Assembly: GCA_016748015.1 (NCBI GenBank)
Contig: JAAOMT010000553.1
Coordinates: forward strand, 62,001-126,000
Length of the DNA: 64,000 nt
Direction of reading: 5' to 3'
Origin: Geosiphon pyriformis uo1
Taxonomy: Eukaryota > Fungi > Glomeromycota
A program made the translations under genes and the position numbers. Positions 34,275 through 43,066 of this stretch are shown here, piece by piece. Under the pieces are notes generated by a model. That model had not been told where the DNA came from. It ran no database searches and saw only the letters and a program-made list of their open reading frames with translations. Position 1 is the first letter of the stretch. Each line of letters opens with the position of its first letter.

Positions 34275-35494
34275 ATGTCCGGAACGCCAAGCGGAAGCTC
34301 TTCTGCAATAATAACAGTACAAACTCCTTCAAGTATTAAATTGCTACATGATCCCAATAAATTCAATACCTTAATACCGGATTTTGCTGTAGCTTTGAGC
34401 TTTATTCAGCGGGGCATCACCTTTGCTACTGATGCCGCGGTTGACATGGAAGAGGCTGAAGAAAAGGTTTTCCTTCTATCTCTTCTCAAAACAGCAACAT
34501 GTTTGAACCCCACCCCCCCCCCAATTGCAGCACAGTCCCTACCCCTCTAACTTAAGTTTTTCATAGACAGATTCACTAGAAGCGGCTACTCAATACTTAA
34601 TTGACCTTGAAAATCAGCTCAAAGTTCAAAAAAATGTTTTGGAAAGTATGCGATCACGGTTAGCCAGGAGAGAGCCTATTGTAAGTATAATTTACATTGT
34701 AATTTTAAAGCAAAAAGTAATAACTTTGTTTTATTTTTATTCAGCCCAATCTTTTGGATTGTTACGAGAAGGAGACAGCCCAAAAAATTCAAGAATCACA
34801 GACAATCCCATTTCGATATGAACAACATCCTGGCTATAACGAATTCAGACAAAAAATATGGGTAATTAATGTTTGATTATTTTTCTATGCATTGAATCTT
34901 TTTATTAATTTCATTTTATTTTGAAGGAAGTAAAAAATCCTGGCGCACCTATGCCACAAACTAGCAATCTAGACGATGATGAGATTGTAGTATCCACCGC
35001 TAAACAATCCTTGCTATGTCCCATCACTACGATGCTTTTTGAAGATCCTGTAACTAGGTTTGAAAATGAGGTTTATTATTTAAACCTTTTGTGTTCCTTT
35101 TTTCTAAACCTAATTTTTAAATTTCATTTTCAGCTTAAAATGTCGCCACAGCTTTTCAAAAAATGCTATTCTCGCCCACCTGAGCAGTGCTGGAGGGCAA
35201 GCGAGATGTCCTGAACCAGGTATGTAACCTTATATATGATCTCTACGCACAATTGTTCAAGCTCATACTCTCGACTTAGTTAGCACTATACTTTTTTGTA
35301 TTCTTAGGTTGTGACAAGCTTATCACCGAAAGTGATCTGAAGCTTGATAAATCTTTGGCACGTAAAGTCGCTATGTACAGAGCACAACCGGAGAGTGATG
35401 AGGATGAGGTAATTCAATGTTCCAATAACTTCACCAATTTCCGCCTCAATTATTTTATTAACTCAAATTTTCATAGTACACAAATGTGGATTAA
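34275..35494 (+). CDS. NSE2: E3 SUMO ligase NSE2/MMS21 (SMC5/6 subunit), 252 aa, 7 exons: 34275-34466, 34567-34680, 34745-34861, 34927-35057, 35134-35219, 35308-35408, 35477-35494
   Basis: All introns are GT-AG and the 759-nt CDS stays in frame. DDDEIVV is followed by the SP-RING SLLCPIT..FEDPVTSLKCRHSFSKNAI..RCPEPGC; YNEFRQKIW motif. Confidence 0.88.
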
Positions 35495-35680
35495 GATCTG
35501 ACTTGATCTGATAAGACCAATATTTTTGTTAAAGGATTTAAGACGGAGACGATTGTGGTGTGTATAATTACTTGTGATTTGTATAATATTTCCAAATAAA
35601 TTAAAAGGCAAAAAGCTTTGGCTTTCATTAATTCAAACCACGCAATATACAAAAAATCGGAATTCATTCTTTTGGATGCC

Positions 35681-37911
35681 TTATGAACCGGAATATAGCT
35701 GTCTGCATTCCTCATCTGTATATCCTAAGAGGTATAAAACATACTTAAGGCTGGGCTGATTTATTCGTGTTCGCGCCTTATTATATCGATCAAAGTTTCT
35801 TAGTAAATAAGTATTTGAACCTCATTACCAAGGAATGTGGATTTGTTACCTTTTCTTGAACGCGTGGCTTCGCGTTGAACGCGATCCCCAAACCTGCCTT
35901 TGCGAGCATATATAAATCGTTTGCCCCATCTCCTATAGCGATTACTTGATCAAGCGTTACGCTTTCAGCTTGTGCAATTACCTCCAAAAGTTCCGCCTTG
36001 CGTTCTCCATCTACTATTGGCCCTACAGTTTCACCCATGAGGGTGAGGCCGTCCGAAGATACTTTCAACTAAGCATCCATTCTTTAATTCTATCATTTTA
36101 TGAAAAACGTGAAAATAAATAATTTTTAAAAATTTTCTCACTTGATTGGCGAACGCGTAATCCAATCCGAGCTCATGCTTAACAAATTGAGCAAGTGGAG
36201 TAAAACCACCTAATAGAAATAGATGAGTTATTGAGAAGCTTGCCAGTCTTCCAAAAACCTTAAATATACTCGCCAGAGATAACTGCTAACTTGAAACCAA
36301 TCTTTTTCAATGCCCGGCATAAAAAGTGTGCCCCTTCGGTAAAATTAAGATTTTCTTTGACAGTCGATAAAACATTTACCGGTGTTCCCTTCAAAAGAGC
36401 CACGCGACGTTTCAAGGATTCCTTAAAGTCAATTTCCCCATTCATAGCGGATTCTGTAATTTTCTGGATATAGAGCAGGAGATCAATCATTTGAAAGCGA
36501 CAAATACTTCACGGAATTATGTTGAAGAGAAACGTACCGCAACTTCATCAACAACTCCGGCCATCCTAGCAATTTCATCGATCACCTCCTGTTGAATTAA
36601 GGTAGAGTCCATATCAAAGACTACCAATCTTTTATGCCTTCTAAATACATCATAAGGCTGAAGGGCAACATCCGTTCCGTGACTGGTGCTAAATTGAAAT
36701 AATTGATGCCGCAATTTTTCAATGTTTGTTCCTAAAGGAACGGAAAGCTTATAATCAGCGCAAGAGACTTTGCCCTCATTCAATCTCTGCATTTTCTCTA
36801 CAGATATTTTTGCATCAAGCAAGATTTTTGTCCATTCGTCAAGAAATTTGGCTGTGAGCCCGTTCTGATTAAGTACTGTGGCTGCATATTTAGTACGATT
36901 TTGATAAGGAGCATCCTCAATTGATTGCGCAATTTGTGTTTCAACGTCATGTAAATCAAAGGCGAGAGTACCATCCCACTTACGGGCCGCCTCGGCGAGG
37001 TCACGAAATAACTCAACACTATCAAATTTTAAGTTGATAAGAACTCCAAAAGTGACATTGTGATAAAGACGCGACAACATAAAATCCTCAATATCACAAT
37101 CATGTGCCGCTACGCATTCCAAAACACAACCGATAATGTCAGTTCCATGCCGCCCTGTTAAAGAGACCAATATTTTTTGATTTGGAAGCAAAGTCGTAGG
37201 CGGAAATAAATTTTGATTATGAGATGGGGGAAAGTCTAATCGTAAGAATGGCCTTTCGATTTTGTTCAGGGGACGTTCACCGGAGTTGCACTGAACGTTT
37301 CCAATCAAATGATCCACTAAACTTTTTTTTAAAGATGAAAGCTCCTCAGATTTGACGAAGGAAAGAGAAGAAGCACGATACAAATATGGAGCACTAATAT
37401 TAAGTCCCGAATGTTTATCATGCTTTTTCAATATTTTTGTTAACCCAGTATAGTTCAGAAAAATGAATTTTTCTAATTTAATGATAGATTGAAGCAAATC
37501 GGAAACCTCATTTTCTTCAGTTTGTATGGTATTTATAGATCTTTGATAGGTACAGATGAGCTCAGCTGAGTATTCTGTAAAAAAATCGGATACCTTTTGA
37601 ACTTCAAAGTCTAACAGCTCCAAAAATTCAGTGACTTTCACTTGAAGTAAAGCTAAGCGTGATAGAACTAGTTGAGGGAAACTAGGTTGATCAGCAGCCG
37701 GTTTCCAAGAGAGCAAAGGTGCGCTATCGGAAATTTTAGCAATTCTTCGTTCATCGTCGGTCATGCGAGACGAAAATTTGGTTAAATTCAAAGGCCCGGA
37801 AGAAATGTGGTGTTTAATATAGAGTTTCAGAGTTTTATAATCAATGCACTGTTCCTGCCATGTTGTGGGTAGAAGTGCCTTCCTTTCTTCGAGATATTTA
37901 CCGAACTTCAT
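35681..37911 (-). CDS. SPX-ACT-ACT-phosphoserine phosphatase (SerB-type HAD) fusion, 648 aa, 5 exons: 37911-36538, 36463-36274, 36209-36142, 36068-35850, 35776-35681
   Basis: SPX hallmarks MKFGK, IDYKTLK and LNYTGLTKILKKHDKH; ACT-like ILVSLTGRHGTDII; HAD motifs FDMDSTLIQQEVIDE, ISGGF and GDGANDL..AGLGIAFNAKP. The 1947-nt spliced CDS is in frame. Confidence 0.92.
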
Positions 37912-38103
37912 TGCGGTACAAGAAACAGGATTAATAAATTTTGATGCCAAAAATTTCGAACAAATAAAAACGCGTCGATTATCTGGTGAATGTGGATAGC
38001 GAATTTCATTGGTAGGATATTTATTTTTCAATTTTTAGCTTTTTACAAATGTTGAATTGAATCTTATATATTACTGTGTAGCACAATATTTAAAAACTTA
38101 ACA

Positions 38104-38135
<32 letters not shown>
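38104..38135. repeat. (ATT)n microsatellite
   Basis: About 10 perfect trinucleotide units. Confidence 0.9.
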
Positions 38136-38339
38136 GATAATTTATGTTTTTATAACTTAAATAGAAAAAAAACAAAATAAATAAGAAAAAAAGCAAAAAT
38201 AAAAAATAAAAAAAACTAAAATCAAATACCAAAACATTTTTATTTAAATTAATACAAATTAAATTAAGTTAAATATAAATATAATTAATTAATTAATTTA
38301 ATTAATTTAATTTAGTTTAACTTGATTTTATTTTTATTT

Positions 38340-41300
38340 TTTTTATTTTAACGAGTGAGGTCCAAATGTGACCTAGTGCTATACATCATACAAATGATCT
38401 AAACTAGATGCGAATTATGTGTTTTCTACACGTGACCAGCCACTCGGGCCAGTCAGGACTACACTACACACCTATATGCACATAAACTGGATCTCCAATA
38501 CCTGAAAAAAATGGACAAAACTTATGAAACCCAAAACCAACTCCAAAAGCCTTAGCCACTCCCAGCAACCTGACCACACCAGCCGAAAACACCATAGGCA
38601 AACCAGAAACTAAAGCAGGAGCGGAGCCATCACGTGGAATCAAACCATGCTTTTCCATAAACACTCAGTGTCTGGTCCGGACCAACCAAACATCATCCCG
38701 AAATGCTAGACAAAACTCATGCACAAAGCTCACAATCCTCTTAGCACCCTTCTTAGAATCTTTAAAGACCGAAACAGACTCACAAAACCATTCATTGAAA
38801 ACAAAGCCTTTACACAGAGCAACACTAACTCCAACCTCAGAAACACAAAAAGCCAAGGCCTATAAGACACATGAAGAAGAGCGAAAAAGACCAGAAAGAG
38901 CCTCCCAAGCTAAAGCATATGCACCCAACAAATGAGCATGGCCAACGGCATCCTGAGAACATGAAAAGACATGATCCGAGGTTTCAACATCACCACAAAA
39001 CAGACAGACCACACTGGGGTATCTTCTATCATATAAATGCTTGTGCACAGCAACAGGAAGCCGATGATGGAGAGCCTTCATAAAGTAAGTATGACAGCCT
39101 GCCATGCACATGCTGGTAAAACCGGATGCCAAGTGAGAATTGGGGTGCCACACCATAGAAGACTTAGACCAATTGATATCAGCATGCAAACTATTATCCA
39201 CAACACAAGAACCCACTCCAATCTCCCAACGAGCTCGATGAACTAACCAGAAAACATCATGAACAAAGTGTCTAGAATTACCAGAAACTGCTGTACCACC
39301 AGCACATAAAAAACGTTCACTGACTAAATAAGGTAGGCGCCAAGCAGAGAGAGCAGCACCTTTGGCAAGCGCATCAGCACACTCGTTGCCTGAGACACCT
39401 GAATAATCTTTCACCTTAACCCAATTTACATCCAAATTCTTTTGATGAATGACGGTGGCAATGTGACGACGCTCGATCCAACAGCAGTTCCTGAAATCCA
39501 GACAAACCAGCAAAGACTCTGATCTACATGCATCCAAAGCAGCCTGGCTATCCGAGAACAAGTCAATTGAACGAGAAAAAAGAACACACTCAAGGGCCAA
39601 AGCTATGGCTTGCAGTTCTGTCAGAGTAGAAGAAACCAAACCAGTCACCCCAACACCTAAACCCAAGTTAATGTCCTCAAAAAAGACGGCAGCACCTGCT
39701 CTCATGTCAACAGTGCCCAGACCAGAAAGAGATTTATTCGTATACACAGAAAGGCGGGCAGCATCAATGGTCGGCAAAGTGTCACGAATTACACCAAAAT
39801 CATGAGAAAGACAAATATCAGACACTGCATGACCATCCACCAAAGAAAAGCTTGAGGAGAGAGGCACAACACTACCAAGAAAGCGAACAGAAAGATTAAA
39901 CCAGAAAGGGACTGGGCCATGAGGGTCCAGCCTTTTCCAATGCTTGAAGGTCCCCCAACTGAAAACATCACCATTATGGTCATGAAGCTGTTCCACAAAA
40001 GCAATTCCATAACACCTGAGCGAAGAGATGCACTTGAAAAAACAGGATTTACCAAGAACCAAAGACATAGGAGTACTGCACTGACGACAAAAAGCACAAG
40101 CTAGAGGGCCTCCCAAAGACAAATCACACCCAGAAAAAATGCAAACCACACCCGCCAAAAAATTATCTAAGGGACTGATACCAACACGAGCCGGAAACAG
40201 CAAGGGATAACAAGGATGCCAGCTGAAAACCTGGAGGTCATGAGACCTATGAGAAAACAAACGACCCAAGACACCAGTAGAATTTGCAAAAGCAACAATA
40301 GAGGCCAATTTACTCTCAGCCTGGATCTGTTCGAAAGTTTTTAAATTGTACAAAGAGGGGTGATGAAGTGCATTACTGGGGAAATCACGTGGCAATCCAG
40401 ACTTTGACTTTAAGACCTTGTATATCAAAGCATCCCATTTACTACAAACACCAACAGAAATGAAACTGAACTGAGTCCTGTAGCTGATGATAGAGAAAAA
40501 GACTGCAGACACCAAATATGCATACTGTTTGTCCGAAATTGCCTTTCTCAAAACAAGATTCACAAAAAACCATACATCAGCCTGAGCTTTAGCCAAGCTA
40601 GGCTTCGAAAGACCCTCAGAAGACAAAAAAATACCCAAATAGCGATGAGATTCCCCTCTCTTGGCAATGGAAATAGGCGCATCACTGATAGTTAAATAAG
40701 GATCCAGCACCCGGCAATTGATGGGAATGGCCACCGTTTTGTCATTGTTTACAGAAATATCATTAAACCTAAAAAACTCACTAGCAACATCAAGGATGTG
40801 TTGTGTAGCAGTCTGGCTACTACCAACCCAAATAGTATCATTGACAAAAGTGCCGGCAGCAAGAAACAAAGACAGCCCAGCTTGAGGATCCACCTGGCCA
40901 GTTCTAGATATGAAATGAGAATTCAACCTGTAGCCATACACACTATCCTGTCTCTTGATCTCGCACAAAAGTGAATCATAGAAAATACGCCAGAGAAGAG
41001 GCGAAAAGACTTCTCCCTGATCCAGCCCATCGTGGACACAATACCTATCAGTCAAGCCAAAGTCAGTCATCACTCTGTTAATGCAACCATTGTGAATACT
41101 GCCAAAAAATCTAATAAACCTGTCACACATTTTGATCCTGACTAGACTCCTCCTAAGATGTTCCCAACCAACCGAGTTATAAGCCTTGCGCATGTCTTGT
41201 AAAACCAGCCAAAGTTCATGGTTCTTCTCCAAGGCATCCTCAACCACAGAACTGATAGCAAAAATGGGAGATTGTATCATTGTACCCTTCAAAACCAAAA

Positions 41301-43066
41301 AATTGTCCCCATGAAGAACATCAAAAGTGCTGCAAGCCAGAGAGATCCTATCTGAAAGGATTTTGGAGAGAATTTTGCAGGCTGTTTCAATTAAAGCTAT
41401 AGGATGGGTGTTCATGAGAACTCCCTTCCATTCATATGGTTTAGAAATCATCGAAACCCAAGCTTCTTTCCAAGGCCCAGGGACCGACTTGCCAACCAAA
41501 CAGAAATTCAAGAGCACCAAAAGCATATTCAAAACAGATTTGTCACAATGTTTCCATAATTCATTGGAGATACCAGAAAGACCAGCCGCTTTTTCATCAG
41601 GAAGATCCTTAACAACAGCTGACAACTCATCAAAACTAATTGAACACATGACATCAAAGAAAGCACCATCGAACACATAATCCAGAGGCCAATATTGACG
41701 AGCCCAATCCTCAGACAAGTCAGACACCATCTCACATTTTCTGGTCCATCCCTCCATAATTTTGTCCACCTTAGACTTAACCAAAACAGGCTCTAAAATC
41801 AACTCATCTTCTACAACCAAATGATCCAGGACCACCTTGCAAAAAGAACGCTCCAAGACACTCCTAATGGTGTAACTCTTGTTCAGCTCAAAACTCTCCA
41901 TTCTTCTATTAATAGCCTGCTTAATAGAGGATTCCTCAGTGCACTTGGATTCCACTAATTTGAAGGAGTGGTATGATTTTCTTGCTTTGGCCAGTGCAGA
42001 ATGAATAAGATCAAAATTAGAACCTAAAAGAAACAGAGACTTAACTACCGATGCACCAGGAGAGTCGAGTCTGTGCCACACCTCCAACAAAGAAGCAAAA
42101 CCATCACTAGAAGCCAAACGCGATGCCTTGACCAACTTAAAAACCAGCAGCTCCAGCTTGTGAAACCTAGAAGAAGTCTTAGTAAACACGCTATCAAAAC
42201 CTTTAAACCATTTTTTCTTAAATGTACCACCCGCTGAAAGAACCATAGTCTTGCGAACAATGTTCCACATAGTGTCCACATCTGAAAATCTTACTGCCAC
42301 ACCAAAAGCATCCAAGAACAAAGAGACATTAGCAGCTAAGGTGTCCTTGAACTCCAACTACTTAGCTTTACTGGCACTTTTGACGTCAAACTTCCAACAG
42401 TCTTTATTCACTTGCTTGCGAAGAAAATTCAAACACGTATCCAAGAGCCCGCCCAAACCCAAATCCACTAAAACAGCTTGATGGTCCGTGTCAAAATACT
42501 CACTGACATTCAAAACTTCACGACGCACTATCGCATTGACAAGACTCGAGGAGACAAACACGTAATCAATTGTTTTCTTAACACCCTTAAAATTTTCTCA
42601 AGTGGGCATCTTTGCAGCCGGGCTACCAACTAAAGAATTGACCAGACCCAAATCAAAACATCTTTTGAAACTTGCACTTTTATGAGAGCCATCTTCATTA
42701 AAATCGCCACCGAGAATGATGAAAGAAGATTCGTTGACAGCCTTTACAATGAGAGAATTGATTTCACCAGCCTGAGAGAACCAAACCACCGAAGAAGCAC
42801 TAGCATAAAGCCCCAAAATTGACACAGAAAGTTTACCCTTGAAAAGTAATTTAATGGAAAGGAGCCGACCAGGCACCTCAGAAATCTTGCACACATGACA
42901 AGCCAAAGAAACGTCTATGATAACAGCAACACCCGCACCCAAGTGACCAGAGTCCAAACCAGAAGTGAACACTCGGACACCATCAAACTTGTCTGCAATC
43001 CACGGACAAACCCTACTTCTCAATTTTGTTTCAGTAACAATAAAGACCAAATTGTTCATTTCCTGA
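38340..43066 (-). mobile_element. 5'-truncated non-LTR retrotransposon (LINE) ORF2: APE endonuclease-RT-RNase H-CCHC; least decayed copy
   Basis: APE motifs VTETKL, ILGGDFNE, IDYVF and TDH; RT motifs LQDMRKAYNSV, GLDQGEVFSPLLW and FVND (D>N); RNase H motifs ELQAI, SDSQAAL and GNECADALA; CLFCG..ETSDHVFSC. (TAAAA)n-like 3' tail near 38325-38350. Confidence 0.95.

Follow-up and report, generated by a model that had tools for sequence, protein, structure and literature searches.

An SPX domain fused to a SerB2-type phosphoserine phosphatase in Geosiphon pyriformis: an old fungal architecture and a candidate phosphate-status input to serine biosynthesis

Within the window, a stretch of 64,000 nucleotides of Geosiphon pyriformis DNA, a gene of five exons, read from the minus strand (35681-37911), codes for a protein of 648 amino acids that is identical to G9A89_009090 of this fungus (database protein P0001). 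The length and both end coordinates agree with those given in an earlier note on this DNA. The features of the gene and of its product are as follows:

35681..37911, minus strand: whole coding region, five exons, 648 codons plus TAA
36538..37911, minus strand: exon 1, 458 codons, with SPX, linker, ACT1, ACT2 and the start of the HAD domain (DMDST)
37288..37911, minus strand: SPX domain, aa 1-208 (Pfam, PDB sequence matches, AF2, Foldseek)
37825..37839, minus strand: Y25...K29 (YKTLK), equivalent to Vtc4 Y22/K26, phosphate-binding cluster
37414..37437, minus strand: K159-I-L-K162-K163-H-D-K166 in helix 4, equivalent to Vtc4 K129/K132/K133/K136
37180..37287, minus strand: disordered linker, aa 209-244, pLDDT 32-48
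36946..37179, minus strand: ACT1, aa 245-322 (Pfam ACT_6, SerB2 alignment, model fold)
36652..36900, minus strand: ACT2, aa 338-420 (SerB2 alignment, model fold)
35684..36630, minus strand: SerB-type HAD phosphoserine phosphatase (PSP), aa 428-648, split by four introns
36274..36463, minus strand: exon 2, aa 459-521 and the first base of G522
36210..36273, minus strand: intron 2, 64 nt, non-canonical GC-AG (GCGAGT...TTAG)
36142..36209, minus strand: exon 3, the remainder of G522 and aa 523-544
35850..36068, minus strand: exon 4, aa 545-617, with K568 and GDGAND
35681..35776, minus strand: exon 5, aa 618-648 and the stop codon

Each exon was compared separately with G9A89_009090, and the five lie consecutively on it (aa 1-458, 459-521, the split codon 522, 523-544, 545-617 and 618-648). 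The ATG at 37911 is located inside an open frame that runs without interruption over 36517-38031 on the minus strand, and 458 codons extend from it to a GTACGT donor at 36537; the stop codon (TAA) is found at 35681. Three of the introns are of the GT-AG type, while intron 2 is GC-AG, the only splice that leaves the invariant SGGF motif in frame. The earlier note had taken the fusion to be genuine and encoded by one 458-codon exon, and the open exon at 36538..37911 bears this out. Its reading of the motifs also held, as both the SPX ligand signatures (MKFGK at aa 1-5, Y25/K29 and the KILKKHDK stretch from K159 to K166) and the PSP catalytic motifs (DMDST at 433, SGGF at 521, K568 and GDGAND at 590) are retained, and the profile search that it had proposed placed SPX, ACT_6 and TIGR00338 all above their curated cut-offs.

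The SPX profile (PF03105) scored 59.7 bits on exon 1 alone and 57.4 on the full-length sequence, with a cut-off of 27.8. The AF2 model of the domain (pLDDT 89, pTM 0.83) is composed of a helical hairpin and a long-helix bundle, with helices at residues 3-12, 16-19, 25-36, 78-127, 133-168, 173-180 and 189-208 and a low-confidence insert at approximately 40-77. Rice SPX1/2, Vtc4 and XPR1 were returned as PDB sequence matches of the SPX part, and a Foldseek search of the PDB with the model gave SPX domains or SPX-containing proteins for all of the top 50 hits (XPR1, rice SPX1, Vtc4, Gde1), with TM values of 0.80-0.83 for the SPX domain of XPR1. The MKFGK motif forms the extreme N-terminus. Six residues of Vtc4 contact InsP6 (PMC9911596), and the corresponding positions of the Geosiphon protein, Y25, K29, K163, K159, K162 and K166, all retain them. 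The lysines of helix 4 form the lysine surface cluster (K159, K162, K166) and provide the third residue of the phosphate-binding cluster (K163). Among homologues, Y25 and K29 are each conserved in 115 of 115 and K159, K162 and K163 each in 120 of 120, and position 166 is lysine or arginine in all 120. The SPX region, with a mean column identity of just 31%, evolves more quickly than the catalytic part does. The deep conservation of the ligand residues makes an InsP or PP-InsP input to the SPX domain plausible. The linker that follows differs in length among homologues.

The remainder of the protein is an ACT-ACT-HAD phosphoserine phosphatase. ACT_6 scored 28.1 bits on exon 1 (cut-off 23) for the first ACT domain, which aligns with ACT1 of Mycobacterium avium SerB2 and has a beta-alpha-beta-beta-alpha-beta fold in the model. 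For the second, the ACT_PSP_2 profile gave a weak score below its cut-off (13.2 bits versus 24), and the domain is assigned from the alignment of aa 243-458 with residues 9-216 of SerB2 (PDB code 3P96) and from its predicted fold. In the model, two ACT folds lie directly N-terminal to the HAD domain, which is the order of SerB2. The equivalog profile TIGR00338 (serB) scored 270.7 bits over aa 414-634 of the whole protein, compared with a cut-off of 144.15, and the catalytic positions D433/D435, S521, K568 and D591/D595 are invariant in 36 homologues. A Foldseek search identified the PSP fold with its cap domain (TM 0.91-0.95, r.m.s.d. 1.2-1.9 Å versus the M. jannaschii and H. pylori enzymes), and the substrate-bound M. 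jannaschii PSP superimposes with a TM of 0.93 and 46% identity to the HAD domain. In the AF2 model of the whole protein (pTM 0.47), the arrangement of the domains relative to each other carries no confidence.

The closest known system for the core is mycobacterial SerB2 (M. avium and M. tuberculosis; PDB codes 3P96, 5IS2, 8A1Z), also an ACT1-ACT2-HAD phosphoserine phosphatase, which aligns end-to-end with aa 243-648 at 35% identity (Foldseek E 1e-34). SerB2 senses serine via its ACT domains, and its activity is tied to its oligomeric state; it has no SPX domain, whereas the fungal protein carries about 240 additional N-terminal residues (SPX and linker). Saccharomyces cerevisiae Ser2 and E. 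coli SerB belong to the same catalytic family (TIGR00338) and act at the same serine step. Yeast Ser2, a protein of approximately 309 residues, is not known to contain an SPX domain and is not counted among the ten yeast SPX proteins.

SPX domains are general eukaryotic phosphate-status receptors, known so far from phosphate transporters, the synthesis of polyphosphate, the scavenging of phosphodiesters and PHO/PHR signalling. The classical fusions, Vtc4 (polyP polymerase), Gde1 (glycerophosphodiesterase), Pho81, Pho87/90/91 and Syg1/XPR1, likewise begin with an MKFGK SPX domain, present the same Tyr/Lys surface to the ligand, adopt the same fold (for XPR1, TM up to 0.83) and follow a common logic, in which a phosphate-status receptor is placed in cis with an effector. 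Their effectors serve phosphate transport, storage or scavenging, whereas the Geosiphon effector is a central amino-acid enzyme with a second allosteric module (ACT-ACT). The C-terminal modules that define these classes (TTM, ankyrin-GDPD, SLC13, EXS, GDPD) were not found in the protein, where only ACT and HAD follow SPX. The classical SPX partners of yeast do not include this architecture, as had been noted earlier. Among solved structures, the SPX part is matched best in sequence by plant SPX1 and SPX2 (PDB codes 7E40, 7D3Y; E 2.7e-11). These stand-alone proteins carry no enzyme domain and work in trans, on PHR transcription factors.

In the 128-Mb Geosiphon genome, the only strong serB locus is the gene described here, and genes for PSAT, IPK-family kinases and PPIP5K were found as well. 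The sole serB locus and the presence of PSAT lend indirect support to phosphoserine hydrolysis as the predicted activity. In a Mucorales relative, a spliced mRNA contig carries the entire open reading frame from SPX to HAD. The one Geosiphon sequencing run that we found contains no contig on the SPX-ACT-ACT-PSP gene at 35400-38300, where it covers just 34 nt that belong to the spliced contig of a neighbouring gene. The run looks RNA-derived because it includes this spliced contig, and the missing contig does not indicate a silent gene. For the orthologue in Rhizophagus irregularis, a transcript-contig search returned genomic records only.

The fusion is widely distributed and is shared by nearly all of the early-diverging fungi. 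Among the matches listed, it is present in Glomeromycotina, Mucoromycota, Mortierellomycota, Zoopagomycota, Kickxellomycota, Chytridiomycota, Neocallimastigomycota and Blastocladiomycota, and the fungi that carry it include saprotrophs, gut anaerobes, mycoparasites and zoosporic species. A tree built from the catalytic part tracks fungal phylogeny, with one fungal clade (SH-aLRT 99), so the fusion has been inherited vertically since near the root of Fungi. In the Gigasporaceae, an arbuscular mycorrhizal family, SPX has been lost secondarily and ACT-ACT-HAD is intact; Gigaspora lacks the domain, and Diversispora has it. A decaying SPX domain is seen in Taphrinomycotina (Saitoella, Neolecta) and in the metagenomic protein P0131. 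Wherever SPX is lost or degraded, the ACT-ACT-HAD enzyme stays whole, as expected of a regulatory add-on. No protein of Basidiomycota, Pezizomycotina or Saccharomycotina was found among the matches listed (best 120-150), and the SPX input was apparently lost in most Dikarya, a view that draws in part on yeast Ser2. These losses indicate that the input is dispensable. The earlier note had found the fusion fitting for a lineage specialised for phosphate trading; given the wide distribution and the loss in Gigasporaceae, the reading as a mycorrhiza-specific adaptation fails, and mycorrhizal biology should treat the feature with caution, as an inheritance from the fungal ancestor. The expected novelty stood in part: a search of the full-text literature returned no paper describing the SPX-ACT-ACT-PSP architecture, but hundreds of database entries are already labelled SPX+ACT+HAD by Pfam. 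The fusion is old, not specific to mycorrhiza and apparently never studied.

Taken together, we rather favour the following reading: the protein is the single housekeeping phosphoserine phosphatase of Geosiphon, it is of the SerB2 type, and PP-InsP on the SPX domain would tune its activity or its oligomeric state. A flexible linker, approximately 35 residues long, tethers the complete SPX domain to the N-terminus of the ACT1-ACT2-HAD core. The SPX domain would bind InsP6 or inositol pyrophosphates at its conserved Tyr/Lys surface and would relay the phosphate status of the cell to the enzyme, with the ACT domains adding serine feedback beside this input. The most probable route would be an altered docking of SPX, or a shift in the equilibrium between oligomeric states of the SerB2-like core. 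In VTC and XPR1, the SPX domains work through a release of SPX contacts that depends on the ligand. The activity of SerB2 depends on its dimer and tetramer states, with L-serine allostery and oligomeric switching described for MtSerB2 (PMC10564941). Ligand binding, its effect on catalysis and the direction of that effect are inferred; by analogy with VTC and XPR1, our guess leans slightly towards an enzyme that is activated by high PP-InsP, in the phosphate-replete state, which would match the supply of serine, one-carbon units and phospholipids to phosphorus availability.

Other readings of the architecture have to be weighed against this one. The SPX domain may bind PP-InsPs and yet steer the location or the partners of the protein rather than its catalysis, either by sequestering a regulator, as in plant SPX1-PHR, or by joining an SPX complex. 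The conserved ligand residues would fit this, the stand-alone SPX proteins that are the top matches (PDB codes 7E40, 7D3Y) do work by ligand-dependent partner binding, and the AF2 model offers no confident intramolecular interface; we nevertheless regard it as unlikely, since SPX stays fused to one and the same enzyme across most non-Dikarya phyla surveyed, its loss leaves the enzyme alone, for which regulation in cis is the simpler account, and no partner is known. A purely structural or oligomerisation appendage, an evolutionary relic without signalling, would agree with the faster evolution of the SPX region, with its decay in Saitoella, Neolecta and P0131, and with the Gigasporaceae, whose enzyme core shows no visible change after the loss of SPX. 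Such a relic is hard to reconcile with six ligand-contacting residues that are near-invariant across most non-Dikarya phyla surveyed, in a domain whose other positions have drifted to about 30% identity, and it seems to us a long shot.

The HAD domain might also act mainly on another substrate, for example a phosphoprotein or some phosphorylated inositol species, with SPX as a targeting module. HAD enzymes are often promiscuous, and one study reports moonlighting of M. tuberculosis SerB2 that depends on its phosphatase activity (PMC4270767). However, the equivalog score is far above its cut-off, the likeness to the substrate-bound M. jannaschii enzyme is close, and without this sole serB-type locus the phosphoserine expected from PSAT would have no phosphatase, which makes another main substrate very improbable. 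An annotation or assembly artefact of two genes, finally, has no observation in its favour and is ruled out with next to no residual doubt, because a single open exon runs from SPX through the two ACT domains to the first HAD motif (DMDST); the architecture is also repeated in hundreds of independent assemblies, and the spliced transcript contig of the Mucorales relative spans the fusion.

If regulation by PP-InsP holds, SPX signalling would reach central amino-acid and one-carbon metabolism through the committed serine phosphatase, and a single polypeptide with two candidate allosteric inputs (PP-InsP and serine) would provide a system for studying how SPX ligands are transmitted. The proposal lends itself to tests in tractable Mucorales or Mortierella species, and the SPX-less Gigasporaceae and the decaying Taphrinomycotina copies serve as natural controls. 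We give about an even chance to the broader possibility that, in the ancestor of fungi, PP-InsP/SPX signalling directly gated the final serine-forming step, as it would still do in most non-Dikarya, the arrangement having been dismantled in Dikarya and Gigasporaceae; ancestral gating of this kind would extend to the supply of one-carbon units, nucleotides and phospholipid head-groups.

One non-fungal protist, the ancyromonad Fabomonas, also carries the fusion, and a shorter isoform is suggested there. A word-index search with its SPX region gave no match. Fungal contamination is unlikely because the protein branches outside the fungal clade, where it occupies a long branch of unresolved position. 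Were the Fabomonas fusion independent or older, it would point to repeated selection for a coupling between phosphate and serine.

The minus-strand open frame 36517-38031 contains the start of the gene (ORF listing). Its first ATG, at 37911, opens a protein beginning MKFGKYLEERK, with an in-frame stop 40 codons upstream and no ATG between, and 458 codons run from this ATG to a GTACGT donor at 36537. In a word-index search, exon 1 was 100% identical to the 648-aa database protein P0001 ("hypothetical protein G9A89_009090 [Geosiphon pyriformis]"). The exon pieces were translated one by one and each was then placed on P0001, which upheld the coordinates, the 458-codon exon and the 648-aa product of the earlier note:

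36538-37911, minus strand, exon 1 (amino acids 1-458)
36274-36463, minus strand, exon 2 (amino acids 459-521 and the first base of G522)
36142-36209, minus strand, exon 3 (remainder of G522, amino acids 523-544)
35850-36068, minus strand, exon 4 (amino acids 545-617)
35681-35776, minus strand, exon 5 (amino acids 618-648 and TAA)

Introns 1, 3 and 4 are of the GT-AG type, with lengths of 74, 73 and 73 nt. Intron 2 (36210-36273, minus strand, 64 nt) has the splice pair GC-AG (GCGAGT...TTAG), and only with this splice is the invariant SGGF motif in frame.

Searched alone against Pfam, exon 1 matched SPX with 59.7 bits (gathering score 27.8) and ACT_6 with 28.1 bits (gathering score 23, amino acids 246-318), together with a weak ACT_PSP_2 match of 13.2 bits at amino acids 350-418. 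The NCBIfam equivalog model TIGR00338 (serB) covers amino acids 414-634 with 270.7 bits (cut-off 144.15). With these SPX, ACT_6 and serB profiles above their cut-offs, and everything from SPX to the start of the HAD domain in one exon, the fusion of SPX to a phosphoserine phosphatase (PSP) described in the earlier note is confirmed. Sequence searches of solved structures aligned amino acids 243-458 over their whole length with M. avium SerB2 (3P96, residues 9-216; E = 2.9e-13). The SPX part matched rice SPX2 and SPX1, the Vtc4 proteins of Chaetomium and yeast, and XPR1; the lowest E was 2.7e-11.

In an AlphaFold model of the whole protein, built from 36 homologues (mean pLDDT 81), residues 1-208 form a helical SPX domain, 209-244 a disordered linker (pLDDT 32-48), 246-321 and 339-419 two ACT folds of beta-alpha-beta-beta-alpha-beta topology, and 429-648 the HAD domain; the pTM of 0.47 gives the inter-domain geometry no confidence. 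Foldseek matched this model to SerB2 (E = 1e-34) and to M. jannaschii PSP (TM 0.93, r.m.s.d. 1.2-1.9 Å, 46% identity). When SPX was modelled alone (pLDDT 89, pTM 0.83), all of the best 50 PDB matches were SPX domains or SPX-containing proteins, headed by the XPR1 SPX (TM 0.80-0.83) and followed by rice SPX1, Vtc4 and Gde1.

In Vtc4, InsP6 is contacted by a phosphate-binding cluster (Y22, K26, K133) and a lysine surface cluster (K129, K132, K136) (PMC9911596). HMMER alignment to Vtc4 chains places these at Y25, K29 and K163, and at K159, K162 and K166, of the Geosiphon protein. In a MAFFT alignment of 120 homologues, Y25 and K29 are retained in all 115 sequences covering both sites and K159, K162 and K163 in 120/120, while position 166 is always basic (R in 108 sequences, K in the other 12). 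As these residues are near-invariant in an SPX region whose mean column identity is only 31%, selection is concentrated on the ligand surface. At the level of residues, this surface is shown to be complete and selectively maintained; ligand binding itself is predicted. Across 36 diverse homologues, the HAD motifs D433-x-D435-S-T, S521-G-G-F, K568 and G590-D-G-A-N-D595 show no variation.

Among the matches listed, proteins with Pfam labels for SPX, ACT and HAD were found in the following groups:

Glomeromycotina: Ambispora, Diversispora, Rhizophagus, Glomus, Funneliformis
Mortierellomycotina: many
Mucoromycotina: Endogone, Jimgerdemannia, Umbelopsis, Mucor, Rhizopus, Phycomyces, Absidia
Zoopagomycota, Entomophthoromycotina, Kickxellomycotina: Syncephalis, Thamnocephalis, Basidiobolus, Coemansia, Smittium
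Chytridiomycota: Spizellomyces, Powellomyces, Rhizophlyctis, Geranomyces
Neocallimastigomycota: Piromyces
Blastocladiomycota: Catenaria, Allomyces, Sorochytrium

Besides Taphrinomycotina, no Dikarya were among the matches listed. This spread rules out a feature confined to Geosiphon or to mycorrhizal fungi. The interpretation in the earlier note thus survives in part: the fusion is real and its ligand and catalytic residues are retained, but the proposed link to mycorrhizal phosphate trading is rejected, since the fusion spans early-diverging fungal groups and the arbuscular mycorrhizal Gigasporaceae lack SPX. An IQ-TREE analysis (quick search with SH-aLRT support) restricted to the ACT-ACT-HAD columns unites all fungal sequences in one clade (SH-aLRT 99), within which the order largely tracks fungal phylogeny; this argues for vertical inheritance of the fusion from near the fungal root.

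In Gigasporaceae, the phosphoserine phosphatases of Gigaspora margarita, G. rosea, two Dentiscutata species and Racocetra have 417-430 aa and start just before ACT1; the SPX-less set comprises the G. margarita sequences L007:1-7587 and L008:1-1365 and the proteins P0314-P0316 and P0318-P0320. Searches by tblastn with three Glomeromycotina queries (E up to 10) found no SPX-coding sequence within 6 kb upstream of the G. margarita locus, and an intron-free G. margarita Logan contig begins only 84 nt before the ATG. Because these proteins are sister to the SPX-bearing Diversispora, the absence is, on the tree, a secondary loss within arbuscular mycorrhizal fungi, and it is shown that the enzyme can dispense with SPX where a lineage has lost it. 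Taphrinomycotina display stepwise SPX decay: Saitoella (P0124) has a recognisable SPX with K29 replaced by T, and in Neolecta (P0317) the N-terminal helices are absent and the lysine helix is incomplete, where a gene-model error is possible. In the metagenomic relative P0131 most ligand residues are gone.

Beyond fungi, the ancyromonad Fabomonas tropica shares the architecture: a Trinity transcript (P0279, 622 aa) encodes SPX (46 bits, Pfam), two ACT domains and a PSP domain, with all six basic/Tyr ligand residues present. In the tree it does not join the fungal clade but sits on a long, unresolved branch, and may reflect either an ancient origin or an independent fusion, both of which fit the tree. 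A second Trinity isoform, P0147, equals residues 213-622 exactly and begins with an internal Met immediately ahead of ACT1; it could be a form without SPX or a fragment left by the assembly. In Sanchytrium tribonematis P0166 (652 aa), whose branch is very long, the SPX profile found no match in the N-terminal extension of ~175 aa before ACT1, which could be an SPX diverged past recognition or unrelated. Five SerB-type protist and metagenome proteins of 817-1664 aa (P0133, P0135, P0141, P0144, P0187), from other eukaryotic lineages, lack SPX; either their N-terminal extensions are long and contain ACT domains, or their ACT/HAD modules are duplicated. This enzyme type seems prone to gaining regulatory modules.

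A six-frame search of the 128-Mb Geosiphon assembly gave strong TIGR00338 matches solely at the gene. Weaker matches (E = 1e-5 to 4e-4) reach only the end portion of the profile, two of them in open frames of 810 and 1228 aa. Phosphoserine aminotransferase is present (TIGR01364, 501 bits), indicating that phosphoserine is made, and with a sole strong serB locus the fusion enzyme is the only evident route for its dephosphorylation. Two loci for IPK-family inositol phosphate kinases and one for a PPIP5K/Vip1 N-domain indicate that the presumed SPX ligands can be synthesised; SPX itself matches at least eight further genomic loci.

SPX domains, such as those of VTC and XPR1, work by ligand-dependent release or rearrangement of SPX contacts. 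Here the disordered linker is a flexible tether between SPX and a core that forms a SerB2-type regulatory and catalytic unit. The activity of MtSerB2 depends on a dimer/trimer/tetramer equilibrium that L-serine shifts (PMC10564941). Binding of inositol pyrophosphate (PP-InsP) to SPX could change how SPX docks or which oligomeric state the core adopts, which would alter PSP activity in combination with serine feedback. Activation at high PP-InsP, which we slightly favour over inhibition, would couple the provision of serine, one-carbon units and phospholipids to adequate phosphorus; from the logic of phosphate release, the opposite sign can be argued just as well. That SPX regulates the PSP is a plausible hypothesis, which deep conservation strengthens.

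Full-text literature searches found no published description or listing of the SPX-ACT-ACT-PSP architecture, and one genome-wide study of how mycorrhizal fungi signal phosphate covers yeast-like SPX proteins only (PMC8401276). Fusion sequences are public, some named phosphoserine phosphatase with a precomputed SPX hit, so that the fusion adds to the SPX-effector theme a variant that had gone unnoticed and is not a new sequence discovery.

The single transcript sought for the fusion was seen in a relative, not in Geosiphon. Logan contigs from SRR14532558 (2058 nt) and SRR14532556 (2014 nt) each hold the full 650-codon P0052 ORF of a Mucorales relative. The former (L016) lacks a 76-nt intron of the Helicostylum genomic orthologue and ends in Illumina adapter, which marks it as spliced mRNA that covers the fusion from SPX to HAD. 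The Fabomonas sequence, too, is a transcript. The one Geosiphon run analysed, X1, yielded no assembled contig on the gene. Since the single X1 contig that maps to this region bridges 35408 to 35477 over a GT-AG interval in the neighbouring gene, it supports a spliced transcript of that neighbour, and the run looks RNA-derived, without an assembled contig for the gene. The convergent neighbour (34921-35508, plus strand) has a weak, sub-threshold zf-Nse match (22.6 bits, cut-off 27) of the Nse2/Mms21-type SP-RING exon kind. Beyond a stretch of 15% G+C, some 950 nt upstream of the gene, an open 1165-aa frame on its strand (38860-42357, minus) matches reverse transcriptase (RVT_1, 52 bits) and RNase H (28.7 bits); it is a retroelement whose ORF is apparently intact.
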